Source: Mytilus californianus
Lineage: Eukaryota
Direction of reading: 5' to 3'
Length of the DNA: 64,000 nt
Assembly (NCBI RefSeq): GCF_021869535.1
Contig: NW_026262745.1
Span: forward strand, 62,001-126,000
Under the pieces are notes generated by a model, which saw only the letters and a list, made by a program, of their open reading frames with translations, did not search any database and was not told the DNA's origin. Made by a program: the position numbers and the translations under genes. Shown here in pieces: positions 29,035 to 63,576 of the stretch; positions within the stretch are counted from its first letter, which is position 1; every line of letters begins with the position of its first letter.

Positions 29035-29262
29035 TTTCAAAACAAAATTTGGGGGGTTTCAAAAAAGTTTGGGGGGGGGGGGGGGGGGGGGGGTGTTTCA
29101 TATTTTGTATCAGAAACCTATATTATGTAAAAGACTTGATCACAATCCAAATTTAGACAGTATCAAGCTTGAATATTATGTCCAAACTTGCCCCAACTGT
29201 TCAGGGTTCGACCTCTGCGGTTGTAACAGGCTGCGCTCGGCGAAGCATTTTATTTTTTATGG
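29035..29262 (-). mobile_element. Internally deleted, truncated copy of the 4038-7187 element
   Basis: The reverse complement matches ~4038-4195 and then runs directly into the poly-C/AAATTTTTTGAACCCCC segment found at ~6440-6470. Confidence 0.75.
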
Positions 29263-29358
29263 GATGCAAGCATCCAAACAAAAGGTATGTCAAAGTCTAT
29301 ATATATATATATATATTAGATGCCAGCGTCCAAATGCTGGTGTGTTCAATATAGATAT

Positions 29359-29680
29359 AAGAAGATGTGGTATGAGTGCCAATGAGACAACTCTCCATCC
29401 AAGTCAAAATTTATAAAAGTAAACCATTATAGGTCAAAGTACGGTCTTCAACACGGAGCCTTGGCTCACACCGAACAGCAAGCTATAAAGGGCCCCAAAA
29501 ATTACTAGTGTAAAACCATTCAAACGGGAAAACCAACGGTCTAATCTATATAAAAAACGAGAAACACTTATGAACCACATCAACAAACGACAACTACTGA
29601 ACATCAGAATCCTTACTTAGGACAGGTGCAAACAATTGCAGCGGGTTTAAACGTTTTAATGGTACCAAACCTTCACCCTT
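29359..29680 (+). repeat. Abundant interspersed repeat (GAAGATGTGGTATGAGTGCCAATGAGACAACTCTCCATCCAAGTCA family)
   Basis: Other copies: 34383-34726 (-), 42365-42592 (-), 61672-61936 (+); fragments at ~36003-36055 (-) and ~52290-52352 (-). Confidence 0.9.
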
Positions 29681-33912: not shown

Positions 33913-36900
33913 ATGGCAGAGCCTGAAACAGAAATCCTGGAAATAACAGCAAATGAAGACACCGGGTTACACAGAGTTGTAGATTTTAATGCTAAATATT
34001 ATAAACAGAAAACAGACGAAAAGATTTGCGACAGAATTAAAAAATATGCTAAGAAATACTCATCAATAAATTACATGAAGTCATGTTTGTTTTCTAATGT
34101 GCCTATAATACGGAACCTTAGAAAATATAACTTACAGAAATACTTAGTGAGTGATATTCTCTCTGGAATTACAGTCGGCATCATGCAGATACCTCAAGGT
34201 ATGTCAGTTAACCACATTGTACAGAAACGGTATTACATGTATATTGTATATTTTGGGTCGTAAAAGAGGGGAGGAATAGATGCATGATCAAGGAAAAAAG
34301 AAAGTATGATCTCGTGTTTGTTTGCCTCTTTTTAAAAGTTGCACGAGCAAATTAACATGATGGAAATCTTATTATGTTGTAATGTTACACTACTGTCTCA
34401 GGTTAGGGTGAGGGTTGGCGCCTGTTAAAAGTTTAAACCCGATGCATTTTTATGCACCTGTCCTAAGTCAGGAGCCTGTTGTTCAGTGGTTGTCGTTTGT
34501 TGGTGTGGTTCATAAGTGTTTCTCGTCTTTTATATAGATTGGACCGTTGGTTTTCCTGTTTGAATTGTTTTACACTAGTCATTTTGGGGCCCTTTATAGC
34601 TTGCTGTTCGGTGTGAGCCAAGGCTCCATGTTGAAGGCCGTACTTTGACCTATAATTGTTAACTTTTTATACATTGTGACTTGGATGGAGAGTTGTCTCA
34701 TTGGCACTCATACCACATCTTCTTATTTATAATTACACTTTGTACGAATATAACTTTTGGCCATCCACTTTATATAGAAAATGAAAGGATATGGAGTAAA
34801 TGTACATGGGACAAAATCGCACACAATACATAGAAAAAATAGAAAATTATCAATGAACAGGGCTTTTATTCCTGTTCTTGATCTTGACAGTTGATGTAGG
34901 GTCTTCAACAATGAACGAATAATTCATACCCTACAACAATGTCAAGACGGCCCCTAGCGTCGACTTAAGCGGTACTATTGATAAAAATAAACCATAGTTC
35001 ACCTTCTTGCTCCCCACCCGCCAGGAGTGCCAACTTGTGCGATGCTTGTGTACGACGGTTCTCCAGTCGAAAGCACCAGGGATACAAGAAAAGTGCAGTG
35101 AATTAATTTTGAAAGACATCGATCGCCGCTAAAATATGCCTTGGTGTTACACATGACAGGAGCGGTCAATGAATTACATAATTTATAATTACGGGCGAGG
35201 TTTTTCATCATATATTTGTCATACATTGCCCAACAAAAGACCAATAATTTCGAAACAACAAATTATAGACAATACATATAAAACTAAAAAAAACCAAATG
35301 ATAGACAGCACGGGGCACATCGAAATATATGTAAGAAAACCTAGCAATTTGAAATAGTATGAAAGGGCAATATACAAAACAGATGACCAGAACAGTATTT
35401 TGAAGAAATTTAACCAAACATGAAATTTTGACGGTGTATTGATATGAGAAATTCTGACATGAACAAGCACACCATAACTGTAAATATTATAAGAGATTAC
35501 ACCTCAAGCACGGGGAAACGTTCTACTGCCTCCACACAGCACTAGAGACAAACTCTAGAATCAATAGAAAATGAAAGGATATGGAGTAAATGTACATGGG
35601 ACAAAATCGTACACAATACATAGAAAACATAGAAAATTATCAATGAACAGGGCTTTTATTCCTGTTCTTCATCTTGACAGTTGATATGCATCGACAAAAC
35701 AGTTGCTTACTTTTAAATAGATTACCAGCAGCGGTGTCGACTAGGTGGTAGTGAGCAATTACATGTATTTGACCACTATGCGCAAAAAACGTGTTTCTTG
35801 AATATCATTCTTTGACATCAAATTTGTTATTTATTTTGGGTACAGTATACAAAATAACAGTCAAACTAAAATTTAACGTTAGACATTTGCCAAATTTGCT
35901 GTTCCAGAGTTATGCCTAACGGATACTCGCCTGATAGCAAAACATTAATGTTTAAAATTATATAATTAAACAATACTTTTTAAATATTTTTTACACGTTG
36001 TGATTTGGATGGAGAGTTGTCTCATTGGCACTCATACCACATCTTCTTATTTCTATTTTGAACACTTCATATATATTCTAAACAAAATCGACTTTTAATT
36101 TGAAATATATCAGCTTTGTATTTCGAAGGTAATGTTCCTTAATAAAGCGAAATTTGGAGATTTTATGTTTCTTCTTTAGACTAGATGCATAAATATGATT
36201 TTAGGAACAATATTGATACTAATAATGTGTCACGAAATATCTACTAGAGTACAATTTTGAAATTTTTTTTGGTGCATTTCGCCTCTTTATAATTATATAT
36301 TATGGCTTATAATGCTAAAGTCAAGCATCGAAATTTGTTATACAAAGACCGTATGTCCATGGGTGCTCTTTACTTTTATGTTTAACTGTAAACAGACAAC
36401 GGACCCCAAACGATGGTAACTAATACACGTCGGTTAAATCAGTAAATACAAATTCAACAATACAGAAAGTAAAAATTGTTTTTTACTCCATTATTTATGA
36501 CGTCTTTTACAAAATTTAGTCTTCATTATAGAATGTTAGATAGAGACGCTCGCCGCCTGCTTATGTCCCTGTCAAATATTATATCTTTGTTTGATGTATA
36601 ATACAATATTACGTCCGAGCTACTCGGCAAATTTAAATCAAAATGATCAATAACTGATGCTGATAAATTATGGAGATTAATAAATGTTTTAACAAGCTGT
36701 TGGAAATTCACCCATTAAAACAAACTTGTCTTTTATGTTTTCAAAATGCAATTAAATCTAGACTTAAAAGCCCGTGTTAGTTGTAAACCACAACATACAG
36801 AATGACCTTATTGCTCTTTCTACAATGTAAAATATGAAACTTAATAACATTGTACTATTTCAGGCGTGACCCGGCTTTGGATTGTGAAAACACTGCCATC

Positions 36901-39900
36901 GATATGAGGAATGTACCACTGTCTTCCTTTTTATTACATGCATGGTATTTGGTTTGTTGATAACATTGCCACCGATATGTGGAATGTACAATGCCGTCTT
37001 TTTTTTTATTACAGACATGGCATTTGGTTTGTTGACAACACTGACACCGATATGTGGAATGTACACTGTCTTCCTTTTTTTATTACAGGCATGATATTTG
37101 GTTTGTCGATAACACTGCCACCGATATGTGGAATGTTCACTGCCTTCTCTTTTTATTACAGGCATGACATTACAGGCATGGCATTTGGTTTGTTGATAAC
37201 ACTGCCACCGGTATGTGGATTGTACACTGCCTTCTTTTTATTACAGGCATGGCATTTGGTTTGTTGACAACATTGCCACCGATATGTGGAATGTACACTG
37301 CCTTCTTTGGTCCTTTGACATACTTTTTCTTCGGATCATCAAGACATCTCTCTGTAGGTAAGGACAATCATATTTAACAGTTACACATTAGAACTGTTCT
37401 GCGTATATATATATACATCCCGTATAATCGATTTAATGCACCCGCTTTCTGCATGCGCTTGACTGTCAGACGGAAGTCAAACTTTAACAATAATATTTCT
37501 TTCTGGAATCAACTTTTGGAGATTTCTTAAAAATTCAGGTATGAGATTTGCATATATATATATATAGCTATTAATACCTATTATTGAAATGCTAAGATCG
37601 ATACATATAGTCAGTCTTAATCAGTCGGTAAAATTTGTGTTGCAATAGCGGCAGTTAATTGAGATAACAATTAGCAGTAGCCGGAGTCAAGAGTGGTGTT
37701 CATATATGTTATCAATACTGTGTTAATGTGCAGTAGCCGGAGTATTTTGAGTTTTTTTTTTGTCTTTGGTTGCAGTAGCTACAGCCAGATTGATGTTGAC
37801 ATATATGTATGAGATAAATTATGTTATTCTGTGCAGTAACTGGATTCAGTTTGATGCTGACATATGTTATTAATTTTGTTATAATGTGCAGTAGTCGGAG
37901 CCAGTTTGATAGTGATAAATGTAATTTATTTTGTTATTAGGAGCAGTAGCCGTAGTTAGTCTGATGATGGCTTCAGTGATTGATGTTGCAATGCAAGAAA
38001 ACAATCTGTATGTAATCACAGAAAACTCAACAAATACTTCAACAGATGAGATTGTTAATAAACGAAAAATAGAGATAGCTACGTCAGTATCATTCGTGTC
38101 TGGGCTAATTATGGTAACAATATGATGTTTATTACTTTTTTTTAACGCTATTTACTTAAAAGAGAAGCGAAAGATACCAATGGGATATTCAACTCATAAG
38201 GCGAAAACAAACTGACAATGCCATGGCAAAAAACGAAAAACGAAGAAAAGTCAGACAAATAATAGTACACACAACATAACTTACACCTTTTACTGTTTAT
38301 ATGTTTATATGCACTTTATAATAATACCTTTTATATCTAACCAGTTAAATAATGTGTTTTTCGTAAATTGTTACGTTATAAATTAGGCCATTAGTCTTCT
38401 CAATTGAATTGTTTCATATTTTTCATGTCGGTGCCTTTTATATCCGACTATACGGTATGAGTTTTTCTCATTGTTAAAGGCCGTACGGTTGCCTTTAATT
38501 GCTTACATCCTCTTTATTTGAACTTTGGTGGATAGTTGTCACATTGGCAATCATACCAAATCTCCTTATTTTTATATTGGTGAATTATTGCATATAAAGC
38601 AACTGTTGATTTATTCAGTTATTACAAGAATGTGAAAATTGTTCTGCTACATAAAAAAAAATCAAATGAAATCAAATGTATACCAGTATTCAAATATTAT
38701 TTTTTTCAGATTTTATTGGGTAAATTAAAGTTTGGGTTGATTTCGACTTACATGTCCGAGCAGTTGGTTAGTGGATTTACGGCAGCAGTGGCAATACACA
38801 TCACAACGAGTCAGGCAAAACATATTTTTGGCATCTCTGTGCCTCAACATAATGGCATATTCAAGGTGATAAAGGTAGGGTTCCAAAATTTAATACCTTT
38901 TCATGCCCATACAGCTCAGTTAAAGGGGGGCAATAGCTACGAGATATAAAAAAAATAAAATATGATTTTGTTTTTTGTTCAATAATTAACATGATAAATG
39001 AAAGTGAAATAGTGAAATAATAATTCGCTTTAAGCAGCCAGTTTAGTTCAATTTTCTCAAAATAAGCTAAGAAACATCGCTGATGAATGATTCACTTGCA
39101 AGGGAATAATTCGAATCCGTATTCATGTGACCGTTAATTCAACCCATTAGTTAGAGATTGGTTACGTATGTATTAGTCGTGTTCAGCCATTAAAAGTAAA
39201 AGATTGTCAACATTGAAAGTGAAACAATTAAAGGTGAACCATTTCGTTGACTGATTCGATCCACAACAAATCATTCTTATGCAGGTGAAAACGATGATTA
39301 ACTTATTTTTTTAACCTATATCATGAAATCAAACAGACCTAGAAAAGTCCAAGTGCACGAGGGCGCTATCTATTTATATTTATGTTTATGTTTATATCGG
39401 GTTATGTATTCGTCGGCAGTTTTTGGAGGTCATCTCGATTGTTAATTAGATGGAGTCTATACTAAAATACACACGAAATGCTGATATAAATTATCGAGTC
39501 CATACATTGTTAATTGTTTATTTCAGACTTATTGTAATTTGGATATACGTTTTATATTTTTTGTATTTTTGTGTTTCATTTTTGCTTTTGTGCTATGTCT
39601 ATATGCCATTTTGTTTTTCTTTGTTAGCATATTTGTTTTTTTATAGTGTTTAAGATTATAACACAATGTTGACTGCTGTACCCCTATTTTTGACATTTTT
39701 ACCTATTATGTCTGTTTGTTTTGTTCACACATTGTTCTCAATATAATGGAATTTTATGCGACTGTCATACAAGTGGGAGGTTAGCTAGCTATAAAACCAG
39801 GTTTAATCCACCATTTTCTACATAAGGAAATGCCTGTACCAAGTCAGGAATATGACAGTTGTTTTCCATTCGTTTGATGTGTTTGATCTTTTGAAATTGC

Positions 39901-42900
39901 CATTTTATAAGAGACTTTCCGATTTGAATTTTACTTGGAGTTCGGTATTTTTGTTATTTTACTTTTTAGTATGTTATAAATAAAATATGAGAATTTGAGT
40001 CAAATTGGTGAACATGAATTTTACAGCTAATGCCCCTTTAATGGGTCGTCATTGTAGTGTCACCCATGTCCGTCGGTTCGTTCTTATGAATACCGCTCTT
40101 ATTCTAAGTTATTTTTTCTTCATGCCTGTAGCATTAAAACTGATTTTTTTGTCGATTATATAAGGAAAATTATATAAGGATTAGATAAAGATCACAAGTT
40201 TCGCTTAAATATATAACCTGCTTTGCACGGAAAAGCGAGGACATTCATATAAATATTATACGCATAACTCAACCTTGTCCATTTTTCTTCGGGTTTGAGC
40301 AGTGAAATCAAGGGGCAATCAAAAACCATAATTCCAATAAAAACAGATAATACAATGACCAATAGAAACAGACAATACAATGACCAAAGAAAAATGAGGA
40401 AAAGACAAACAACAATTACAGATCATTACGATGAAAAGTTTAAAAGATTTAGCAACACAAACCCTTGGGATGTTGGGAAGGAAAACAGTTCCTTCTCCAT
40501 AAGTGACACCCGCATGCACGTTAAAATCTGGTAGAAGTTGTAATCGGTAATGTCACAACCGATGAAAAGCGAAATGGATTCTGGTTACGACAGATCATTA
40601 TTATATACCTTTCAGTGTTGTATTCAAGCTGCGTATACATGGAATAGGATCCCAATTACAGGATACCAGTCCATTACCCACGAATGAAGTCTCTTAATAA
40701 ATCTACCATCTTTTAAATGGGATATTGTACCGAGATGAAAAATATGTAAAGATGCTTAAATTTGTAGTATATATAAACATGATAAAGGGTATTCATTAAA
40801 CTTTCAACTTCTGTAAATTTTCAGTGATTCTGAAATGTATAGGGTGGACGATTGTCTGAGTAAATGGTCCAAATTTTATTTTCGATTTTAATCAGGAAGT
40901 TAATAAAATGACCCTATTAATACTCAAAACAGTACTGCTCTCTTAAATGCCGGTCATGACCTTCCAAAAATTCTCCCATAAGCCATGAAGTATGAGAAAG
41001 TAATTTAAATTTTGCAGTCTAATATAGGGAATAAAAATTCTTCCCCTCAATTTGGATAAAATTTCATTGAAGTAATGGGGGAAAATTTGGTCCCCGTTCC
41101 ACATAATACGTATTAATCTGGAAATTACAATGAAACAGAGTTTTAAATCGAACTATTTAATGATCATTGTAATTACCTGTACTTTATTATATCCTATTTT
41201 TCAGACCTGGAGAGATGTTTGTTACAACATACCATCCACTAACTTCGCCACACTCATTAGCACTGTGATTTGTTTTATCATTCTTTACCTCGTTAAAGTT
41301 CAAATTAATATGAGATTTAAGGCCAAACTGAAGATGCCCATTCCTATAGAACTCATCATTGTAAGTATAACAGAAGATGGAATAATTGAATCAATTGTAT
41401 TAAGTTAAATTAATAATAATTAACATTAACCACTCTATTGGTTATATAATGCTGAGTCGCACAGTTAAAAAATGGATGCATCATTGGTGAATGTAAGAAA
41501 ATCAGATGTTTTACAGCTACTTTAAATCATATGTTAACATACAATTACACTAATGTATGAATAAACAAATATGGTGGGTATATATTGATTAGACTGCAAC
41601 CCAACGACACAAAACAAATCTGAAGGATTTTCTTAAATCAAAACATGATCCATGTACTTCAAAGCACTTATATTTTCTCTAAATATGAGGTTTGAACCTT
41701 TAGTTTTGTATCAAATAAAAATGAATAAACAATTAAGATAGTATAATTATAAATGGTTCTTCTTTTAAAGATTTCCATTGCAACTGTCATAGCTCATTTT
41801 GCCAAGTTCCATCAGAGGTTTAACATCAACATTTTAAAAGACATCCCAGCAGGGTAATGTACAGTTTGTTTAGCATGCTATCGTCGGGCGGCTTACCATT
41901 CGGGACTAGAGTAAAAAAGAAGATCGATTTCAAATCAGTCATTACTTTAATTTTTCATCTTATTAACACGACTCGGCAACATGACAGGTGCAACAAGTGG
42001 AACATGATCTAATTATCCTTCCGGAACACCTGAAATCACCAAGGGTGCAATGCAAAAAACACCAAGGTAGTGCAAACTGTATCCCTGCTTATCAATTTTA
42101 GAATGAATAGTAGTATTTAGCCAATACGATACAAATTGGCGATAATATAAATATTTATTTTATTACTTTGTATCATTATTGTAAATAACTTCTAAACTGT
42201 TTTGGTCAATACATTATATTTGAAATTAAAGTAAAAAGGACAAGAACTGTGTAAATAAACATCTCTCCACTGAGTTTTAGTATAATATCCATGGTAATCT
42301 TCAGACATTTTAATCTTTATTTGAAAATAAAAGCACATTAAAAAATATCAAAATGTACTTAATTGTTTGCACCCGTCCTAAGTCAGGAATCTGAGGTTCA
42401 GTAGTTGTCGTTTGTTGATGTGGTTCATAAGTGTTTCTCGTTTCTCGTTTTTTATACATGTGTAGCTTGCTTTTCGGTGTGAGCCAAGGCTCCGTGTTGA
42501 AGACCGTACTTTGACCTATATAATGGTTTACTTTTATAAATTTTGACTTGGATGGAGAGTTGTCTCATATGCACTCATACCACATCTTCTTATATATAAT
42601 TAATGAATTCCAAAATTACTTAATAAGTTATTAAAAAATAGCTTAAAAAGATATGTACCTTAGTTTTATGCTGACTACAAATGCCTAATTTAAACAATCT
42701 GGACCATGTGAATATTTCAGGTTGCCATCACCAGTTTTACCTAACCCTGTTTTGGCTACAGGGTATGTAGCTGACGCCTTCATTATAGGAATCGTGGCCT
42801 TCACCCATTCGGTATCTGGCGCTAGACTTCTGGCCAGGAAACATAATTATGAAATTGATCCTAATCAGGTAGGTTTTAGTCGCTCATTTGAGTCTGGATC

Positions 42901-45900
42901 ACGAACATAGAAAATGTATTTGTTTTATCATTCGACAAGTAAGCGAGTTCCGATAGATCTGTATTTTAATCAAATTGGTATAGTATTATTCCAGAGACAG
43001 ATGACGTTTTGAATGATGGCCAATCAAAATCAAAGAAGACACCAGACGGACATGTTTTTCCTCCAAACAATTGATCTGTAACAAAATGAAAAAACTAGTC
43101 TTCTATGACCTTCAAAAACCTCTTTATCTTGTGCCCGTTCCTGCTACAGCTTAGTAATTTAAAAACAACATGTCTAAATCTACAATGTACCACACATACT
43201 GGGGAATGAGTATGAGACACTCGCATGCGATTCATTGTATTTGCAACGAATTAATACTGAAAATTAACACTGAAATTTATAAATTTCATAAACTTCCGCT
43301 TCATAAAATTTTAAGCATTGAAGGCAGTTACTTACCTGTTTAGAATATAATGATTCGAAATTATGAAAATAGTGTTTGTAATGATACTTAATTATCAGTA
43401 AATTTGTTCATTTATACTAAAAAAGCTAATAAATTACAGATATTGAGAAAGTTAAGTGACACATAATTATTTCAATAGGAGTTGGTTGCTAGTGGAGCAG
43501 GGAGCGTTGTATGTTCAATTTTCTCTGGATACATCAATGCTGGGTCATTATCAAGAACTATGGTACTAGATGGTACGAACGGTAAATCCCAGGTACACTT
43601 ACACAATGATATTTCTTTCTTTTGAGTTTAGTATGGAGTGTTCAAATCTAACGTAGAAGTACATTATAGAAGTCACATCAACAAAATCTTTCTTAGCACC
43701 TGACCATTATTTTTTAACATACTTTAAAATGTTCTAACAATTAGTTTTACGCTATATATATGTTTCCCTCGATGTTAGGGAATTTAAGAGCCTTCATAGA
43801 CTTTAACATACTTATCTCCTGACAACTGGGGAGGATAAGAATAGTGCTTCATAGTGGTGAGGACATTGACTCTCTTTTATCCTAGTATATTAAACTCAAT
43901 TCATGTTACCCGCCTTTACAAGAGAAACTCGGGCTGCATACTGCGCGTTCTTTGGAACACTTTTACCAATGCTAAGTTTCCGGATAAGAAATATTAAATA
44001 GTTGATTTTAACAATATGTATTGTTAGAGTTTAACGAATTAGACAGCTTTAGATAAGGTATATTATTCAAATCTATACAACTTTATTAAATTATTGTTGA
44101 TTAATTTCGTAGAGGAAAAGACATTTATGATACCATCATTCATTTATGTGCACGTATTAATAAACGCTTTTACATTAAATGTATTTTGCTATCCACGTTG
44201 CAATCTATATACAGATATAATTAACATTTGTTTCCATATAGTAATAATTAAATGTGCATGATTTGAATAAAAATCAATATTGAGTATCAAAAAGATATGT
44301 AGCCAAAAGCGTATCTTTCATTGCAAAAATAATTTCTAGATAATATTTTATAGATCGCCTGTTTAGTGGGATGTGTTATTGTCATAATCATGATATTAGC
44401 AATTGGACCATTGTTTTACTCATTACCAAAGGTAGGATGCTTATTATAAGTAATACATTAATTTCTGGATTAAGTCTTTTTTTCTAGCAAGGTCGTCACT
44501 TATCTTGAAAACATTACACAGTCATTTTATTGTTTTTAACTTCTATTATATTTTAACTTTCTTAACTGTCTTTTATACTTTAGAGTAACTATTATAGTTT
44601 ATATTTAATTTTGTTCATTTCAATATTTTAAACTTGAAATCATTTTTCTTTCCTCATTTATTTATGATAATATTTTATTAGAATCAGACAAACAAATAAA
44701 CTACACCATACGATATTAATAGTATTATAAGGGTTTACAAAAAGGAATGGAAAACCTAAATCCGAAGTTTTTATTAATTTTGTAAAAAAATGAGAGTTCA
44801 TTTTACAGTGTGTTTTGTCAGCAGTAATAATTATAAACCTACGAACGATGTATCTTCAAATATTAGAGGTACCATCACTGTGGCGCACATCAAAGTTTGA
44901 TTTTGTAAGTAGAAACTAAAACGTGTATACGAAATGTTTAAGACTCTAATATAAGAATAGTCAAGTCAAATATTCCAATTGTTACAACAATCCCGCTTCT
45001 TTTTCCCTCGAATGTGACATCACCGAAGTAGATATCACTGAGTTTGCTCTTTCATGATGAACTCGACGGGTGCCAAATATGGAGCAGGATGATCTGTTTA
45101 CCTTTCTGGAGCACCTCAGTCCTGATATCACCCCTGACATTTGGTGGGTTTTGTTTTGCCAAGTTGTGTTTTGTATAATGTTGTTTGTCCTTTGGTCGTT
45201 TTCATGCCCCACTTGGGGGCATTATGTTTTCGGTCAGTGCGTCCGTCCGTCCGTCCGTCCGTCTGTCACGCTACAGGTTAATGTTTTTGGTTAAAGTTTT
45301 TGGTCAAGGTAGTTTTTGATGAAGTTGAAGTCCAATCAACTTGAAACTTAGTACACATGTGCCCTATGATATGATCTTTATATGTTAATGCCAAATTAGA
45401 GTTTTTACCCCAATATCATGGTCCACTGAACATAGAAAATGATAGTGCGAGTGGGGCATCCGTGTACTATGGACACATTCTTTGTTTTTTTTTGCCAAGG
45501 CGTTGTCAGTTTTTTATCGACCTGTGATTTTGAATATCGCTTTGGTATCTTCCGCCTCTCTTTCAAATATAATAGAAACCAAACGATACTGTTATAAAAG
45601 TATACTCTTGTCCAGCAGTAAAATCCATGATAAACAGTGTCGTTCGTTTAGCTATGCAGGATGTATAAATACTCATACACGTTCGTTTAGCTACATGTAT
45701 ATATGCAGATGTGTAAATGTGCATTCACGTCCGGTAAGAATGGGTACGTTAATTGTAATATATTTATATAGTGTTCTATGAATCTTAAGGAAACTTTGCA
45801 AGAACTCTCTGAGGGGTTTATATATGGCCTGTCACAAGGGTCAATGTCAGCCCTTATCACAAATACAATCTTTTTCAAGTGACAATCTAAGTGTTCATGT

Positions 45901-48900
45901 AGAACCTTCATATTTAATTTACTGTTAATGTGTTCTCATCTAGAATATATGTAAAACATTTGCAACTGGTAGGTAAACAAACAACAACTATCAATCAATC
46001 GTATATATTGCACAAACCAAAAAATATCTGTATTATCAGAATTTAAGTACAGCTAATTCAAATACATTGTTTGTGAGTTAAATGAATAGGAACACAGTAT
46101 AGACTAAACAAAAGAGACAAATGTAAAGACAATGTCAAACAGAAGTAGTGATGTTTTTAATGGAAATCCAAGAATACTACACAGAGAAGATAAGTATTCA
46201 GAAACAAATCTAACTTAACCAGAGATGAACTCAGATGTACATGTCGTGGTTTTTAAAAAAATCGGAATTCAGTGATATAAAGTTTTAATGCGAGCAAGGA
46301 TATTTGAACTTTAACAAACGTAACAGGTTCAAGTGTGTTTATACGTCTAGAGAACAACATGAAGGTTAATATACACGTGAAGATGGCTATTACATTAAGA
46401 TTTTTTTTGTGTTTAAATTTTCTATCTAGCCACGAGTTTCTCTATTAGGGAGGGTATGTGGAGAATGGTGTGTATAAAGAAATATTATAGTCTTGTAACT
46501 GCAAAGTCTATCATAATGAATAACAAATGAAAGTCTTGAGGATTTTACACGTCCATCAATGTTAGTTGTATTATTGCAACAAACTATAATCCATTAATTA
46601 CATGTAAGATTGAGGGTATACAGCCAAACTCATGACTGTGAATAAAAATATCCAAGTCAAGTATAGATTTGAGTAAAAACTTATAGCTCTGCATGTTGGA
46701 ATAGGAAATAAATCATAGCTAATTGAACGACATTGAAAAGTGGCCTCTGGTGGGTAGTTGAGAATGAGATACTAAACGTTTTTATTGTAAACCTTTTTTT
46801 CTGCAGGTTATATGGATGGTGACCTTTCTGACCTCATCCATTCTTGATGTAGATATTGGCATAGCTTCAAGTCTGATATTTTCTCTATTGACTGTATCAT
46901 TACGAACACAAAGGTCAGTGATAAAGATAAAATTATAGGACTGTACAGTCCGTATAGTATACGTAAGCACAATAATATAATGTAGCTCTTTTTATAGTTA
47001 TGACAACTATTACAATTATTTGGCATTCTGACATTATATATTATTTTTATTTGATCAAAGATAATTCTATAAATATGACCAAAGAAAGAAGTTCAAGGTT
47101 TGAAGTATTATGCCGAAATATAGAATTATTTTTTTGCTGCAAGATGAATGATTACACAAGCACACTTTGTGAAGATATGAATTTGAACAAACTATGTTGT
47201 ATTCATTTTCAGTCCTTCGTCATATACACTAGGATTTGTTGGGAAAACAAATCAGTTAAAATCAGTAGAAAGATATGATCCCGTAAGTATCACTTCTAAT
47301 ATGATAAATACACAGAGAATTGACTGATGTTAAACTGGATGTTAAGCAAACAAACAGTTTGTTTGCTTAACATCCAGTTTTAAATACACATAGGCGATGG
47401 AACACACTCGTCTTTTTATATTTCATCCGTACACTTTTGACAATGCATACATGTAAATATGACGTGTATTGCTTGGGAAACTGAAAACTTAGTATAGGAC
47501 CGTTTTATCGCGGTATATTATTTCCAAATTCTATTTATAGATTTTGAATGAAAAATTAAAATGACATAGTTGGGTTTTCTTAAATAGCTTATGATAACGA
47601 AATATACATGTACGAGCTGATATTCAGATGACATTTAGTCGTTGAAAAAATATATGCATATTTCGGCATAAGTGAGATAGAAAATGTGGAGGAAATGGAA
47701 GAGAGACCATGTATCTGAGAGACGGAAGATACCAAAGGGATATTCAAAGTCCCAAAAAAACTGACAATGTTATGGCAATACAAAAAACGAGATCAAAAGA
47801 CAACATCCTACAAAACATAACATAAAAAACTAAAGACTGAGCAACCCCACCTAAAACCGGGTGATCTCAGGTGCTCTGGAAGGGTAGCAGATCCTGTTCC
47901 ACATGTGTGAAATTACAAATCAAAAATTTTAAACTTTATATAATACAAAACGTTTAAAACCATATTTGCACCATTTTGCTGTTATACTCGCGTCTCCAAA
48001 ACATCATTGTAAAGTAAAGAACATGATATACATGTAACTTAATTCTGTGAGATACAGAATCAAGTAAGGAGAATAAATGTTGTCGTTCATTCATTAAAGC
48101 AAAATTGATAGAATGAAAACTATCCTACAAAGTCAACAAACTCAATGAGTAATCGTCTACCCCTTTTTCAGGTTGTTGCGCCAGACAATGTTAGAATAAT
48201 TCAGTTCCAAGCCCCTATTTACTTTGCTAATGCCGACATATTTGTGAAGAGTGTGGTCAAGTTGACTGGTATTGATCCAGTAAAGGCCAGGAAGAAACAG
48301 AAACAGTTTAATCAAGTGGAGACAAACATAAGCCCGGTAATTGTTGTATCCTTTGATATAAATCCAGTGATTTATTATGATATAACATTTATACTGTGTC
48401 TACTAATAAAACAAGACGCTATTTATATATCAATGAGACACCAAACTAACGAAAAACAAAACCAGACAGTCTTGTAAAGGTTAACAAAAGTCTCCAACAA
48501 TAGACAAGTGTCTATGTTCCAGACCATATGAGTATTTGTACCGTACGCGTATGGTCATGACCATATGAGTATACATATGGTCCGACCATACGAGTACGGT
48601 CAGACCATATGAGTATATACTCGTTTGGTTATTAACGGGCCATACTACTAGTATATGAGTATTTAGACCATAAAGGTATTTTTCGAATAAATTCAAACTT
48701 CCTTAACAGACACAGCTCGTTCTCTGAACCAAAATTGGAACAAGTTATTAACTGAAATCCATTATCTTTGTCACATGTTGTCTGAATCTTGGTATATTTG
48801 TGTTTTGCCCTCACAATATAGAGTCAATTTTAAGCACCTTTATGCTGTCAACAGTTTCGTCCGTACATGAAACCACAGGTGTTTTGAGAATGCACATTTT

Positions 48901-55303: not shown

Positions 55304-58300
55304 ATGGCGACAGTTATAATTCAGTTTTGTAATCGTTGTGAAGAAAGGAAATATTTAAAGCTATGTAAGAAATGTCTACAGTATTTATGTAGTGATTGTA
55401 AGCGTGAACATTTCTGCGGAGTTACCGCAGCACCTCCAACTATCTATAGTTCTAGTGAACACTTGATAAAGAGCATCGACAATAAACCATTCCAATGTCG
55501 GACTCATTTGAAGGAAGTCGTCCGTTTTTGTTTTACTTGCACCCTCCAACTTTGTGAGGAATGCCTAGATAACGATCTCTCTGAGCATAAAAACCACGTG
55601 ATATACAACGTAGATAACGCTGCTAAAGAGATACGAAGGCAAACAGATGAAAAAATCGCATCACTCAAAGTTAAGATAGAAAAGGCTAGAAGGCAGAGAC
55701 ATGAACTTGATAAACAAAGGTTCAGTTCAACACACAGACATAATACTAGACGGCAGGTCACTAACCTCGCCTCTAATCTGGCCTCTGCCATAGTTGCCGC
55801 TATTGAAGACCAGGCACGATTAGATAAAACAGTAGCTGCCGAAAGTGTAACAAAGCTTCAGAAGACTATTGATGTTTGGACGGACACCAACCGTACACTA
55901 CATAAAATCTCTACAGCACCTCACAACCTAGAAAATATCCATCTTTTCTGTAAATATATAAAAGTTCATGAAAATTTGGATTTACCTTCTATAAAGACAA
56001 CAGCTGATTTTCCTGATGATAGAAAATTTCAACACTCAGAACTTATTCAAACCGAATTAAGATCATTAGTGGAATACTTAGAAGCGTTGTAAGTATGCAT
56101 TGCATGTAACGGGGAAATGTAATTTACACTTAAAATGTATAACATTAAACATTTGTTTAAATACAATAACCTTAAATAGCATGAAATAAATTATACGTAG
56201 TATTGGGACATTCCGTTTATGATAGAAAAATTCACAAATGATATTCCCACTTGAACTTTGTTGTATGAACGCTATAAATAAAACAATACAAAACTATCAA
56301 CAAAACAATGCACTTAACATTCATAAATTGAAATAAATTCAACTCAAATGAAGTCGGGTGTTAGGAGCAAACATCAATGAACTGGAGATGCTTCACAGTT
56401 CAGTGAAAGTGTAAAGTTTGGTTTCGGGTTGAAGTTGCTCGATTGTAACAAAATTGGCGTTCAACTTGTTCGGAAACATTTCTATTCATAATTTCCAATT
56501 AAAATACATAATGAAATTTCTGTATTTGTGTATACTACATGTATGTGTAGTTTTCTTACATTCCATAGTGTAAATGGAAGTTTTAGAATTGATTAGTTTA
56601 AAAATCCCCCAATTAAAAAGTAAAACCCAAAACACAACAAATTAAAAACAAAATAAACCACAGAGAATGTATGTATTAAAAGGAGAATGTATCCCTTTTA
56701 TTTTGATTTGAAGTAAGCGTATTTACATATTTGGCAGTACATTAAACCAACATTGCTTACCTGATTGAAAATCTTCTTTTAACTTTCTTAATACATGTTT
56801 TAAAGGCAAGCTCTTTATAGTTATTTATTTTAAAAAATGCATTGCCCAGTTTTCTTTTAAAATGCTAAATTGTATTTCACCCTATATAATCTTAATAAAA
56901 AATGATAATTTTATTAAACATTATAGAATAATAACATATACCTGTATAAATCTACATATAAACGTTCGAACCATTAGTGCCTAATTCAAATACAAATATA
57001 CAACTACATTGTATGTCCACACAGACAGGTTTATCTGAGGCCTGTTCAGACGAAGAAACACACAAGCTTCTAGATACTTCATAACCCCGCAATGGCAATC
57101 GAGGTACACTAATATAGATATAAATAGACAAATAAAACAACCTCTCATTCAGTATCTGTTTAAAAAATTTTAGGGATGCGTGCGATACTAACCATTCCAC
57201 AACGCAAACAGTTATTAGTTTATTTTATAGTAGTTGTATATCTCGAACCCTTCTGCTGCATGCAGGAACTATAAGAATTGTATGCACATGTTTGTGTACG
57301 GTAGTTAAAGCGTTGAACTTACAGTCATCCGATGCGCTCCTTCAAAATAGCTACGGTCAACTCAGTCTTTTACTAACTTATAAAATACACAATGATATCG
57401 ATACGTTTTTATCTATTATATTATCTATTCGACAGAACTGGTATCAATGTTCCCTTGCCTGTGAAAACACAAGAAGAAATAGAGAGGTAATGTTCTAAAT
57501 CAGTTTAATTCTGTAGACTTATTAGTAAAAATCTATCTATAAAAAGTGACTGGTCCTTAATGAAAAGTGAATATTTTCATTTCTTTAAACAAATAATAAT
57601 ATGGACTGGTTATCCGGCTTCCTACAACAATAAACACTTACCGCCATGTTATATGAACGGTTTACATAAGATGAAATACGCAATGCTTAGGACAGTCATA
57701 TATTCTGTCGGTCTCGCTAAAAGAAACTAGTTTCCTCAAACTTTCATGCATGTGCACAATATCATGTGTAATATGTTCACAAAATATATCATTGCATACA
57801 ATTCTTGAATATTTAAGACTTGCAACCGCCTATGATCGAGAAATGACAATGGTTGATTTGGCTACCAACCCAGCGTCCAGACCACAATCAAGAATTAGTA
57901 TTAAAACAAACATGACAGCGACTACAATGCTGACTAAATACGAAGAAGATTCCATCATGTATATCAAAAGTGAAAATCAAGCTTTGAAAATGGAACTCAG
58001 GTATGGTGTTCAATATATAACTGTTAATGATATATACAATGTATATATTCTGCAATACAAAATATGATCAGTCGAAATAGCTCAAAGATGTTATTATTCA
58101 TAGATGCTGGATCATATGTTTAGCACTCCTGAACAACAATATCGTACTCTAGAAACATGTACTTACATGTACTGATCATTATCATGTAGGTGTGAAATAT
58201 GAACAGGAAATTAGCAGACAATTATTTATTTTGTTTATAGTTTTCAGACATAAGCAGATAATTGTTTATTTCGTTTATAGTATTTAGACATTCACCTCCA

Positions 58301-61300
58301 TCAACCGAGATAGTTAAGCTTTAAAAACGTTAGATCCACCTCAATAGCGTGCATATGCATAAATTTATGTTATAATTTGTTGCAGTAAACTTAGAAAACA
58401 GACAAAAGAAATGATGCATGCGACATCCCTTCTATCGAACTACTGCACAAACGTGATGACGTTTTCCTTGATGCAGGAGGATGATATACTGGATGCCCTA
58501 AGAAAACCCATGGTGGACGATGATGAATTATCTGAGTTCTATCATAGCATCTCATCTGTTGGTCATTCCTTCTCAAAACTAAAGAGCAAGATGTAAGTTA
58601 ACAATGCATTCTACATATGATCATATAAAATTACCCATGAAAATATTACGAGACTGGGGCTCTTTTCACAAAAAATCTTACGACAAAAAACGACCATCCT
58701 AGTGGACCCCTATTACAGGACCTACATATTGTATTTATTGGGAATTTGTTTTCATCCTGTAAATGCATGAGACATTAGCCACTAAACGTCAATCAAGCAA
58801 TCAATCAATCAATCAAACAAACTTTAAATCGACACCCAGTGTACAAGTCGTAAAATCAATTAGCAGAGAATTAACATTTATCTACTATAAAGACTAGATT
58901 ATTTTATGACATGCATTAGGTTAATCTTTAGGATTGCATATTCGTTGACAACATGTTTCAGGAAAAGTAAAAACTCAACTTCAAAAATACTTTACAAGTA
59001 ACATATCAGAGTAGTATATGCAGACTAAAAACTTTATTTGTGAGCATGTATAGTAAAAGATGCATTCTTCACCGGTAAAATTTCCATGACTCTGTCTCTA
59101 CATTATCATATTTTGTAGTCAAATTTTTCAAAGTAACAAAGAAATATGAAAACACTGTCATATATTACTCTTTTTAACCTTTATATTGTCTTGCTTCAAA
59201 TTAACAACTAGCAATGCTTGTATCTTCTAGACTGAATGTTGAAAGCACTGATATGGGATCCTTTGAAGACCTCCAGAACAACACGGATGACACTAAAAGT
59301 ATTCAAACAAGGTGAGTTACTATATTTTTATTAATATACAATATATGTACATTGTCAGAAAATATAAAATTTATTTGTATGAGCTTAAGAAACAGGAAGA
59401 AAAGCAAAGCTGGGAGCCTCGCTTTTCTCCAGTTTCGTAGCGAGTACAAATACATTTTATATTTCTTTTAGAAACAGGACGAAAAGCGAGGCTCGCCGAG
59501 CGTTTCTCCTGTTTCGTAGCGAGTACAAATAAATTTTATATTTCTGACAATGTACATATATTATTTTTATCCTGTAATTTTTACACGACACTTTAAGGTT
59601 TATTCGTTTAAATCCAAATAGTTGGCTCTGCTTTTTCAAAGAAATCGACATATTACGGTGATGTTGTTTACCGAGCCCTGAAATTTAGATACGATCCGGG
59701 TAAACTTTTCAATCCTTTAAATAAACTTTTTCTAAAAGGTTACCAATTCAACACTGTGAGTAGACATTTGAATATTGCTTTTATTGGTGTATATATTGTC
59801 ATCAGTAAATCAAAACCATGCTAAATATTATTGTTTTACACATATGCACATTCACGGTACTACAATCTGTCTATACCTATAATTTGGCATTACATACATG
59901 TAAGGTCATGTTTTTCTCTGACTGTTAATGACGTCTTTAAACTAAATCCGTTGGATGTTAGATATGTACTGATTGATATTTTCGTCTTAGATACATGATT
60001 TTTTATTAGTTGTTATTGGCTATGAACTAGCTGTCAGTAACTGTGAGTTCTCTCAGATCTGTACTTTGTGTATTTCTTGTTTTTAAGGATGTATAAATAC
60101 CCTGCCACGTCCGGCCTGTATTATCAAGTTTTAATAGATGTCTTTTCTGCTATGTATCGATCTGACGAGTTAAGCCCTTTTCAACTGTAGATTTTTCTAG
60201 TTTGTTCTAATATTGTACTGTTACCACACTCCTAGATTAGGGGAGAATTGGCGCCTTCAAACATGTTTAACCCCGCCACATTCTATATATGCCTTTCCCA
60301 AGACAGAAGCCTGTAGTTTCGTTATTAACTAGGCCGTTAGTTTTCTCAATTGAATTATTTCAATTTTACAATTACAAATAAAGCAAGTGTAGATCTACAT
60401 GTTATTTGTACAAAGTTGGGTGATTGCAGGATAAAAGAAAATATTAAAAATCCTTCTAGGCAACTCTGTGTTTAATCACCTTAAGCCGTTGTACCAATAT
60501 CAATTTTTATACATTATACTTTCCAAGGACAAAACTTTTTAAAATGAATTATTCCATAAAGATATCGATGATACCCACCCAATAATCAATTACCACTATT
60601 AAAAGCAGCAAAGAGAAAAACAACACAAGTAAACAATCGACATATAGAAAATGTTTGGCATTCCGCGAGTTTAGAAGATTTAATAATTTTTGACGCAATA
60701 GATGTTATCCAAAGCGGACTAGCAACATTTCAACACAGTTTATTACTAAAATAGGAACATTCAAAACTAAAATTAACGAATAAAAACTTAATGAACGAAG
60801 TAAACTATTACATAGGATAGCATATCCAAATAAATTTTATTATCATTATCAGAACATTTCTAAAACTTCATTAGAAATTTCTACAAAGCATAAAGCAAGG
60901 TAATAACTCATCAAAGATACAAACAATCTACCATATAATTTCGTACGCCATACTCGCGTTTCTTCAAATGAAGACCCACCAGTAGCGCTCGAATCCGGAG
61001 TGCAATAAGCATTACACATAAGTTTCCGTAATTAAGACAAACTGCAGTCGTCCAAAAAAACAAATGCGACGGAGATTTTCCTCCACTTCTTAAATGCCGG
61101 TTCTCGAACATCTCTATCTATTTTGCATTAAAAGTTCACGAGAGAAGTCATATCATAGATTATCTTCATCCTTAAAAGGTGTTACCTAATTTCTTTGATA
61201 CATTTTGTCATACCTGAAAAATTCCAAGAACATTAAAATCTTTATATTTCAGGATGACCATTGAAACTGTAGCCAATCACAGCATAGCAGAAACAGTATC

Positions 61301-63438
61301 CACTACTATCCACGACAAAGTCAGCGAGTTACCTCCCATATCACAGAAGAGCAGTAGACCAAACAGCATTATTTACATGTACTCTAAATTGTATGATAAT
61401 GAGTGGAGTGATGCCTTAGACGTGCTGACACAGTCTGGAAAACGATGGGCTATGGACCTCGTCATAAAACATCTATACATAGTCATAAAGGTAAACTAGC
61501 TTTATCATTTTTTTATTTTACGACGACGAGGGTTTTGTTTAACGACCATGGCTACCCATGAGGGTCTTGCACGGTCGGGTTATTTTACTTAGTTTAAAGA
61601 CATAAAATATGAAATATGTATTACTTAGAATTCAAATTTTTTTACCAAATACAATACATGATATAGTAATAGGAAGATGTGGTATGAGTGCCAATGAGAC
61701 AACTCTCCATCCAAGTTACAATTTATAAAAGTAAACCATTATAGGTCAAGGTACGGCCTTCAACACGGAGCATTGGCTCACACCGAACAGCAAGCTATAA
61801 AGGGCCCCAAAAAATTACTAGTGTAAAACCATTCAAACGGAAAAACCAACGGTCTAATCTATATAAAAACGAGAAACACGTATGAACTACATAAACAGAC
61901 GACAACTACTGTAATCAGATTCCTGACTTAGGACAGTTTGTTTTCATACTAATACTGCATTTCCGATAATCTGTTAATTCTTTATCAATGGATTGTGCTT
62001 CGTAAACGTGTGTATGTGTATTCCAGGCTTGTTACAAAATATGTAAACATATAGAAGAGCAACAGCTACAAGATCTGATTGACACAGTGTTTCTCTCAAA
62101 TAATGGCCGAAGGGTGAGTTTAAGACTAAAACCTAGAGATTCTTGCAACTTAACAGACAAAAAGAAAAAATTAGAAAATAAGGTGAAGTGATGTGATTTG
62201 CAAATGTGACAATTATACCAAACAAAGAGAAAATCACGTGGATGTATAGTTTTTATTTAACATTTTAATAAAAAAGTTAATAAAAAACCATTTATATGGC
62301 ATTTTATTCAACATATATAACAACATTTCATCTTTTGGGGCAAAACTTCGACTTTTGTTATTTATCGATTAGGCAATGTCCATAGCTTTAAAGTCATGCC
62401 TGTTTATATGATCTTAATATGTATGATCGTAAGGACTGAATATAGTTAGAAAGAAAAAAAAATCAACCAAGAGTTATTTGATTGTTTCCTCCGTCTTATA
62501 TCAGGGATAGGTGCTTTTCTTTTACCATTTGTTTCCTTTAAATTAAAGAAATGTGTTTTAGATTATTAAGAATATATTTTTTTTCTTTCAGCTCCCTCTA
62601 ACAGATATAAAGGCAATAATGGATTTACGTAGACGAATAGCAGTTGATACAGCCATAAACATCAGACAGGTATCACTTTTTACGGTGTTTTTATTTTTAA
62701 ATATTTCTTTTTAAATTATTTTGTTTTTTAAAGCTCTTCAACTTTCTTACAAATCTTGATCTAACTAGTATAATTCCAGCGCCACTTATGAGTGTTTTGT
62801 AGAAAAAAATAAATACAGAACACTAAATCCTAAACAAAAGAACACTGCAAAACTTTCTTAATGTGATTTATCATCTTGAAATTAACTTATAGTTTGTCAA
62901 CATGAGCAAACATAATGACATTATTCTTTAGTTTAGATGATTAATGGTTTTAATGTATCAAATTTTAACTTGATCTCCTTAAGAATGTCCTCAGATACGA
63001 ATATTTTGTTTTAAAGAAAACTCGTATTTATTTACCTAACTTTTTCTTTGTAAATTTTGTAAATGAATATTAATTTATCTATATCTCTTACTGATGATTC
63101 GTATAATTGAATTTTATTTTTTTTTACCTTAGAACATACCAAAGATGGACCAGTTTCAATCAGAGCTGACCAAGTGCTCATTTAAAAAGGACAAGTTACT
63201 TAAACAAATATACGATACTCCATTTTACGGTAAATGTGTATATTTATGCTGGTGCATGACCTTAGAGGAGCCCCCGTTGTGTTTAGACAAAGAACCACCG
63301 AAAGGATCAGTAGTTGACAAAGATTTATATAGAGAATTTACCAAGGGAGGAAAAAGAATTGAGTATTGTGTATGGCCACCATTACTTCTTAAGGAGGATG
63401 GCGAGATTCTAGTTAAAGGAATTGTACAAGTTCGTTAA
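55304..63438 (+). CDS. RING-less TRIM-like protein: B-box1, B-box2, coiled coil, fused to a Mieap/SPATA18-like C-terminal domain; 9 coding exons, 671 aa
   Basis: Exons: 55304-56088, 57436-57486, 57818-58000, 58386-58592, 59231-59311, 61253-61490, 62027-62113, 62592-62669, 63133-63438. Total 2016 nt, all GT-AG, one open frame. B-box1 CxxC-x8-CxxC-x4-CxxC-x3-H; B-box2 CxxH-x7-CxxC-x4-CxxC-x7-HxxH; Mieap-like motifs LYDNEWSDAL, KCV.LCW.M...EPP and Y..FTKGG..IEYCVWPPL.L...G.ILVKG.VQ. Confidence 0.8.
59340..59562. mobile_element. 223-bp foldback/MITE-like element with ~40-bp TIRs and an internal ~79-bp duplication
   Basis: AATATATGTACATTGTCAGAAAATATAAAATTTATTTGTA (59340-59379) is the reverse complement, with one indel, of 59524-59562. 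The interior has two copies of AGAAACAGGA...GTTTCGTAGCGAGTACAAATA. Confidence 0.8.
59930..60320 (-). repeat. Dispersed copy of the SINE-like element that seeds the 500-bp array
   Basis: CTAGCTGTCAGTAACTG, CTCAGATCTGTAC, CCCTGCCACGTCC and TTAACCCCGCCACATTCT are reverse complements of motifs in 22630-22910. Confidence 0.8.
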
Positions 63439-63576
63439 GTAAATGTACAATCAGACGAGGAAATGATACAAAATAAAACAAACACAAGTGTACAACGTTA
63501 TCCGTTTTACCAATAAATGATAAAGATAGCCATTTCCAATTTGAAAGATAAAATTTATTCATTTCAAACTACTTTA

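Follow-up and report, generated by a model that had tools for sequence, protein, structure and literature searches.

A RING-less B-box/coiled-coil module joined to a MIEAP domain in a nine-exon gene of Mytilus californianus

The DNA analyzed here, referred to as the window, comprises 64,000 nucleotides (nt) of the mussel Mytilus californianus (RefSeq assembly GCF_021869535.1, contig NW_026262745.1, positions 62,001 to 126,000 of the forward strand). Its positions 55304-63438, on the + strand, almost certainly hold one nine-exon gene, whose product is built from B-box1, B-box2, a coiled coil, a linker, and a C-terminal MIEAP domain, named after the mitochondria-eating protein (Mieap). The gene is a member of a small, old, and fast-diverging Mytilus family with a shared architecture and exon structure, and it belongs to the bivalve-specific Mieap expansion. 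It is an undescribed variant and not a new system, its sister genes being already present in Mytilus databases. Taken as a whole, this account of the gene, its family, and its inferred mechanism is the best explanation at hand and is probably correct.

The nine exons splice into 2016 nt, which read as one uninterrupted frame of 671 codons followed by a stop. All eight introns have GT..AG ends, with a pyrimidine-rich tract before each AG, and their phases are 2,2,2,2,2,0,0,0. The start codon stands in the context aaaaATGg. The open reading frame (ORF) finder ends the B-box ORF at the TAA of 56090-56092, and these three bases are positions 2-4 of the GTAAGT donor that follows 56088. The first-pass annotation had claimed as much, adding that eight further in-frame exons lead to a protein of 671 amino acids (aa); the placement of the TAA, the open frame, and the GT-AG ends at every junction bear out both statements.

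Exon 1 (55304-56088) encodes aa 1-261 and contributes two bases of codon 262. It carries both B-boxes and the coiled coil, ends at the TT/GTAAGT donor, and is supported by its frame and by the joint 56088>57436, found in three sequencing runs. Exon 2 (57436-57486) has 51 nt and phase 2 at both ends; the joints on either side occur in three runs, and exon 2 of the annotated M. edulis paralogue is equal in length and phase. The following three exons, each supported by frame and joints, encode linker: exon 3 (57818-58000) has a Ser/Thr-rich segment and the onset of a second, short coiled coil (aa ~322-352), with no Pfam family; exon 4 (58386-58592) is 76-77% identical to the closest homologues; and exon 5 (59231-59311) has 81 nt, as in the M. 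edulis paralogue. Exon 6 (61253-61490) encodes the end of the linker and then the start of MIEAP (~aa 471, nt 61356); the joint 59311>61253 is present in three runs, and the exon aligns to the MIEAP domains of two Mytilus proteins, P0055 and P0008. The middle of the domain is encoded by exon 7 (62027-62113; 87 nt, phase 0, GT-AG ends), which is open in frame and homologous to the 87-nt M. edulis exon 7, and by exon 8 (62592-62669; 78 nt, phase 0), also open in frame, the M. edulis exon likewise having 78 nt. Exon 9 (63133-63438) spans 306 nt, as in the paralogue; it encodes the C-terminal half of MIEAP, which ends at aa 670 (nt 63432), and closes with the TAA at 63436-63438. Exons 2, 5, 7, 8, and 9 are the ones equal in length between the two genes. 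Two AATAAA polyadenylation signals (63472-63517, + strand) lie 34 and 74 nt past the stop, as a pattern match only. An additional exon-6-like match in intron 6, at 61745-62026, proved to be the exon 7 match extending further at low identity, and a second gene copy inside the window was looked for and rejected.

Transcript evidence was drawn from contigs of runs X1 and X2 (organism A) and X4 (organism B), together with the raw-read RNA run X21, placed on positions 55650-61600. The run search returned no entry registered as an RNA source for the stretch, but in several small candidate runs the contigs contain 10-20% of its words, close to an exonic share of 25%. The joints 56088>57436, 57486>57818, 58000>58386, 58592>59231, and 59311>61253 are exact, of the GT..AG type, and present in contigs of X1, X2, and X4; these first five junctions connect the B-box exon to the first MIEAP exon (exon 6) in all three runs. 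Contig depth is ~5-7 over exons and zero over introns outside high-copy repeats, at an identity above 99%. The empty introns, the exact splice joints, and the high identity indicate that the contigs are RNA-derived, and an origin of the spliced contigs in genomic DNA or a retrocopy is rejected on the same depth difference and identity. One X1 contig consists of exons 1-2-3 and one X2 contig of exons 3-4, while a second X1 contig of 1128 nt covers exons 4-5-6 and continues for another 658 nt, a length that would accommodate the 471 nt of exons 7-9 and a short 3' untranslated region. Junctions 6-8 are supported by the frame staying open, by the collinearity of the MIEAP match, and by the annotated M. 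edulis paralogue, whose introns have identical positions and phases. Of the chain of splice junctions that the first-pass annotation had drawn, the first five are seen exactly in RNA in three runs, and junctions 6-8 stand by frame, MIEAP collinearity, and paralogue structure.

In X1, a depth of 1-2 runs on from exon 1 through 56089-56445, about 350 nt into intron 1. A message retaining this intron, and ending at the TAA within the donor, may encode only a 262-aa B-box/coiled-coil module.

These data bear directly on whether the locus holds two genes, namely a B-box/coiled-coil gene ending at 56092 and a separate Mieap-like gene downstream, with the joined contigs arising from read-through or assembly chimeras. 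The stop at 56090-56092 exists in the ORF, the low X1 depth does reach into intron 1, and no single contig carries all the exons. Nevertheless, the joint 56088>57436 is an exact GT..AG splice in three runs with two organism labels, and the annotated 592-644-aa paralogues are collinear with the spliced product from end to end, including the exon 1/2 junction. In blastp, residues 1-670 of the spliced model align with residues 1-643 of M. edulis P0055 (E value 8e-77, 25% identity), an alignment that spans the exon 1/2 junction and exons 7-8, the latter being too short to score separately. Moreover, when the M. edulis gene was rebuilt on its chromosome locus (L001), it also comprised nine exons, and each of its eight introns shares its alignment column and phase (2,2,2,2,2,0,0,0) with the window gene. 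A pair of independent genes is, in view of this agreement, very improbable. Because intron columns and phases are shared, the fusion is old relative to the divergence of the paralogues and was inherited as a whole gene. One difference was observed in intron 3 of the M. edulis paralogue (L001:12398-12923), where nothing but a GC-AG intron reproduces the RefSeq protein; at that position, the window gene has GT-AG.

The front end of the protein is a TRIM-type module. Pfam scans covered the separate exon pieces and the paralogues, and in exon 1 they returned zf-B_box with an E value of 1.2e-7 and 32.2 bits (cutoff 24.1) over two stretches, the better at aa 61-100. The B-box1-type zinc finger (55328-55417, + strand; aa 9-38) has the ligands C9, C12, C21, C24, C29, C32, H36, and C38 and matches the PML B1-box (6imq). 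The B-box2 zinc finger (55496-55597, + strand; aa 65-98), with ligands C65, H68, C76, C79, C84, C87, H95, and H98, matches TRIM5alpha B-box2 (5k3q) with a template-modeling (TM) score by target of 0.69 and a root-mean-square deviation of 1.9. All 16 zinc ligands are kept in the window protein; in an alignment of 39 sequences, 38 of them relatives, C9-H36 of B-box1 and all eight B-box2 ligands form nearly invariant columns. The TRIM-type coiled-coil region follows at 55610-56083 (+ strand), with a helix at aa 103-204 and further helices at aa 211-223 and 245-260 in an AlphaFold2 (AF2) model. This model of exon 1, computed from the alignment of 38 relatives, has a mean predicted local distance difference test (pLDDT) score of 80.5 and displays two small zinc-finger folds, a helix of ~100 residues, and two return helices. 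In Foldseek, it matches B-box/coiled-coil chains of TRIM72 (7xt2), KAP1/TRIM28 (6qaj and 7z36), and TRIM5alpha (4tn3) at probabilities of 0.94-1.0 and E values of 1e-3 to 1e-2. In the ESM Atlas, the matches are TRIM24, TRIM25, TRIM46, TRIM58, and TRIM71 clusters (TM scores 0.47-0.58) and mollusc B-box clusters. The Pfam TRIM_CC match in exon 1 is weak and below threshold (E 0.093).

Neither a C3HC4 pattern nor a tblastn match (best E 0.53) to the RING parts of nine TRIM hits was found in the 48.5-55.3 kb interval. An upstream RING exon is accordingly ruled out, with nothing RING-like in the 6.8 kb preceding the gene. The protein starts 8 residues before B-box1, and the paralogues begin at the same Met. 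The protein thus has no RING and therefore no intrinsic E3 module. With the B-box match above cutoff, the TRIM-like model of exon 1, and the RING absent upstream, the proposal of a RING-less B-box/B-box/coiled-coil module made from the bare sequence holds.

Between this module and the C-terminal domain lies a linker of ~210 aa (aa 262-470, exons 2-6), which is Ser/Thr-rich and acidic, matches no Pfam family, and contains the short heptad stretch at aa ~322-352. The identity of the C-terminal domain is set by exon 9, which alone matches Pfam MIEAP (PF16026) with an E value of 6.5e-10 and 39.8 bits (cutoff 27) over profile positions 123-194 of 195. The match of exon 6 covers profile positions 1-43 (E 0.044) and is weak on its own, yet collinear with that of exon 9. 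After splicing, the alignment of aa 472-670 with P0008 and P0055 takes in their entire MIEAP domains, and the C-terminus keeps all 17 of the columns that are invariant in a seven-row alignment. An Atlas feature search with exon 9 returned MIEAP fragment clusters only. The Mieap-type C-terminus first assigned by motif is in this way upheld by exon 9 above the Pfam cutoff and a collinear exon 6.

A different function for this domain has been considered, in which MIEAP would be a GrpE-like partner of atypical Hsp70s (HSPA12) and the protein a TRIM-like scaffold that recruits or resets chaperones, with no lipid-binding or mitochondrial role. The expansion of both Hsp70 and Mieap orthogroups in bivalves (PMC8382680) would suit such a partnership. 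By hhalign, however, the MIEAP profile matched E. coli GrpE with a probability of only 0.14%, a test of low power. When four MIEAP proteins were scanned against Pfam, GrpE was not listed at E values up to 10, and no PDB relative of the MIEAP profile was found by sequence, both of these being low-power tests as well. On balance, a GrpE-like role is rather unlikely.

The relatives of the gene place it in a Mytilus family. A search with exon 1 among 1.84 billion representatives gave 52 hits, one of them with MIEAP, the nearest being short fragments of 60-79% identity. The best full-length match is P0008 of M. galloprovincialis (592 aa), with zf-B_box, TRIM_CC, and a full MIEAP domain in Pfam; the MIEAP part of the window protein is 39% identical to it. 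Pfam recognizes MIEAP as well as zf-B_box in four proteins (P0008, P0055, P0056, and P0057), although the zf-B_box of P0008 and P0055 scores 23.1-23.2 bits, just under the cutoff of 24.1. Proteins of the same architecture include M. edulis XP_071125285.1; M. galloprovincialis VDI41420.1 / A0A8B6F045 and XP_076117731.1; M. coruscus CAC5361577.1 and CAC5390091.1; and M. californianus XP_052077897.1. The close relatives of P0008 in M. edulis, M. coruscus, M. californianus, and M. trossulus carry the labels "uncharacterized" or "B box-type domain-containing protein", and precomputed domain lists give MIEAP in all of them and zf-B_box (PF00643) in the M. coruscus entries. The description of the locus as the best candidate for a new system was overstated, since proteins with PF00643 and PF16026 and the nine-exon structure are already in public Mytilus proteomes. 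Word searches starting from P0008 or from the P0055 MIEAP region led solely to the same Mytilus group, a word search with exon 1, constrained by its length window, found fragments only, and an Atlas feature search with P0055 gave no usable match. A metagenome scan for further MIEAP sequences yielded a single locus (L005).

Directly upstream of the M. edulis paralogue, at L001:1-3839, stands a gene for an 802-aa product with a weak zf-B_box and MIEAP, forming a tandem pair. Its B-box half is too diverged to be among the 52 exon-1 hits.

The closest homologues of the window copy are three loci on long ENA contigs (ERZ21930238, ERZ26273167), examined at L002:10001-20474, L003:10001-20474, and L004:10001-16040 and 60-78% identical to it. 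Exon order is kept in L002 and L003 (exons 1-8) and in L004 (exons 1-5), as far as the locus or the match extends. Against these homologues, the ratio of nonsynonymous to synonymous substitution rates (dN/dS) is ~0.07-0.15 in both halves of the gene, with synonymous divergence saturated. Both halves are under purifying selection. About 5 kb upstream of each of the three loci lies the last exon of another MIEAP gene; these copies thus sit in tandem arrays, unlike the window gene.

Another reading takes the protein as a fast-evolving innate-immune sensor or a restriction-factor-like TRIM relative, with MIEAP as a variable recognition module, for instance for microbial or exposed mitochondrial cardiolipin. 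RING-less TRIM proteins and TRIM5alpha-like lattices function in immunity, and this background speaks for a sensor. So do the overall identity of just ~25% among paralogues, the single MIEAP-bearing representative cluster reachable from the B-box half, and the tandem copies, some of the close ones looking broken as in birth-and-death families. The pattern of conservation points the other way: identity to the paralogues is 39-45% in MIEAP but ~23% in the front half. MIEAP is the best conserved part and therefore the opposite of a variable recognition module. In addition, dN/dS is far below 1 in every part measured. A sensor of this kind is consequently improbable, to about the same degree as the GrpE-like role.

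The account favored here, of one intact gene of the B-box/MIEAP family with a scaffold-like product, also has observations that weigh against it. Junctions 6-8 lie beyond the region on which contigs were placed (55650-61600), and all nine exons occur together on no single contig. In the sampled 6% of the raw RNA run X21, no read fell on an exon, and the gene therefore looks lowly expressed, in keeping with the contig depth of 5-7. Among the closest homologues, exon 1 has a frameshift in L002 and L003 (near aa 132-135) and an internal stop in L004 (after aa 99); these disruptions may mark decaying copies of the lineage or be long-read assembly errors. The AF2 model of MIEAP, computed from a seven-sequence alignment, reaches a pLDDT of only 33.8, a poor result because just seven similar sequences are available. 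Finally, the transfer of function from vertebrate Mieap/SPATA18, including p53 induction and cardiolipin condensates, is weak, the gene being at most a putative orthologue of vertebrate SPATA18.

Some of these points could be turned into an alternative in which a lineage-specific gene arose by the domain shuffling that B-box expansions of bivalves commonly show and now drifts, nearly or wholly functionless. Low expression and the disrupted frames of the nearest homologues would agree with drift, as would the lack of an annotated orthologue of the window copy, none having been found in the exon-1 representative search or by exact look-up of the exon-1 ORF. A drifting gene would nonetheless be hard to reconcile with a frame intact across nine exons, with the retention of 16/16 zinc ligands and 17/17 invariant MIEAP columns, with a dN/dS of ~0.1, and with an architecture and intron positions maintained across very divergent paralogues. 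Drift is for these reasons quite unlikely, more so than either the chaperone partner or the immune sensor.

The preferred reading, a functional fusion, may be carried one step further, to a tentative mechanism. The protein could be a multivalent, non-ligase scaffold that presents MIEAP and is oligomerized by the TRIM-type module, a possibility suggested by analogy with TRIM proteins and human Mieap. The role put forward in the first-pass annotation, a TRIM-like receptor that would couple oligomerization to mitochondrial quality control or immune signaling, derives from the names of the domains and is putative. The B-box/coiled-coil module would probably dimerize and form higher-order assemblies as in TRIM proteins, with a front end predicted to have no intrinsic ubiquitin-ligase activity. 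The flexibly tethered MIEAP domains, two or more in number, would then be presented as pairs or arrays. Such a scaffold might act not as an E3 ligase but by concentrating the ligand bound by MIEAP, a lipid or a partner protein, and building assemblies on the target. The two-part logic of human Mieap would be retained, with the TRIM-type oligomerizer taking the role of the hydrophilic half. That the fusion and its exon structure are kept across very divergent paralogues suggests that MIEAP works as a multivalent, oligomer-presented module, and a multivalent logic has likewise been proposed for human Mieap condensates.

A broader conjecture, unlikely to hold, extends this scaffold to a distinct class of TRIM-like assemblies that lack a RING and are peculiar to the mussel lineage. 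The MIEAP heads of these assemblies might bind exposed cardiolipin, on damaged mitochondria or bacteria, or HSPA12 by way of a GrpE-like head, and the TRIM-type lattice might turn this recognition into a condensate or signaling platform. If true, this would amount to a new functional TRIM class and would offer a first handle on the expanded bivalve Mieap family. No paper was found that gives a function to the bivalve Mieap-domain or B-box expansion, and the fusion provides a compact construct for asking what MIEAP binds. It adds MIEAP to the C-terminal domain types of TRIM-like architectures; alone, it opens no long-standing question.

Several other features were observed in the window. High-copy transcribed repeats occupy 59232-60425 (intron 5) and 58635-58833 (intron 4), with depths of hundreds to thousands (three RNA-type runs, raw RNA reads) and many loose ends at 58658/58689, 59653, 59999, and 60266/60315. 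They include an internally duplicated unit of ~80 nt at 59374-59545 and a (CAAT)n microsatellite near 58800-58827, and are probably mussel transposable elements or short interspersed nuclear elements. From 61421 on, contig depth climbs to 55-180. One repeat family is present both at 61500-61900 (intron 6) and at 29069-29416, the ORFs 61609-61728 and 29069-29416 having a 14-residue peptide in common. Upstream of the gene, exons of an SLC26-type anion transporter lie on the + strand at 33913-48477, where its N-terminal and STAS-region exons seem to be represented by ORFs 33913-34263 and 48145-48477, respectively. At 4997-5815, a tandem repeat with a unit of ~126-130 nt, which the ORF finder reads as a 272-aa repetitive ORF, looks like satellite DNA and not a gene.

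Compared with known systems, the window protein shares with the TRIM family, or RBCC proteins, tandem B-boxes with full zinc ligands, a helix of ~100 residues, and two return helices. It differs in having no RING, a sub-threshold TRIM_CC match, and MIEAP as its C-terminal domain. RING-less members of the family include TRIM29 and the TRIM16 type. MIEAP is not known as one of the C-terminal classes described for TRIM proteins (COS/FN3/SPRY, PHD-bromo, filamin/NHL, MATH, ARF, and transmembrane), and no paper was found in the literature that joins B-box or TRIM with MIEAP or gives MIEAP as a TRIM C-terminal domain. The first-pass annotation, which could not place the combination among described classes, was right in this respect.

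With vertebrate Mieap/SPATA18, the window protein shares a C-terminal MIEAP domain and the succession of a hydrophilic, coiled-coil, partly disordered front and a structured C-terminal half. B-boxes are absent from human Mieap, in which two ordinary coiled coils flanked by disorder make up the front half. In the human protein, the hydrophilic front half, with its two coiled coils and disordered regions, gives multivalency, and it is the structured, hydrophobic C-terminal half that directs the protein into mitochondrial condensates containing cardiolipin (PMC10845071). In bivalves, Mieap genes are greatly expanded, with ~53 genes per genome in the largest orthogroup, and a B-box orthogroup is also expanded, the fusion being unmentioned (PMC8382680); in mussel gills, Mieap-domain transcripts are over-represented (PMC5549309). 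The closest known counterparts are the Mytilus B-box/MIEAP proteins, which have the same order of B-box1, B-box2, TRIM-type coiled coil, linker with a short coiled coil, and MIEAP. The window protein is longer than these (671 aa, compared with 592-644 aa) and has a longer linker. With an overall identity to them of only ~25%, and 39% in MIEAP, the window gene is a distinct old paralogue within this family rather than an orthologue of any of its annotated members.

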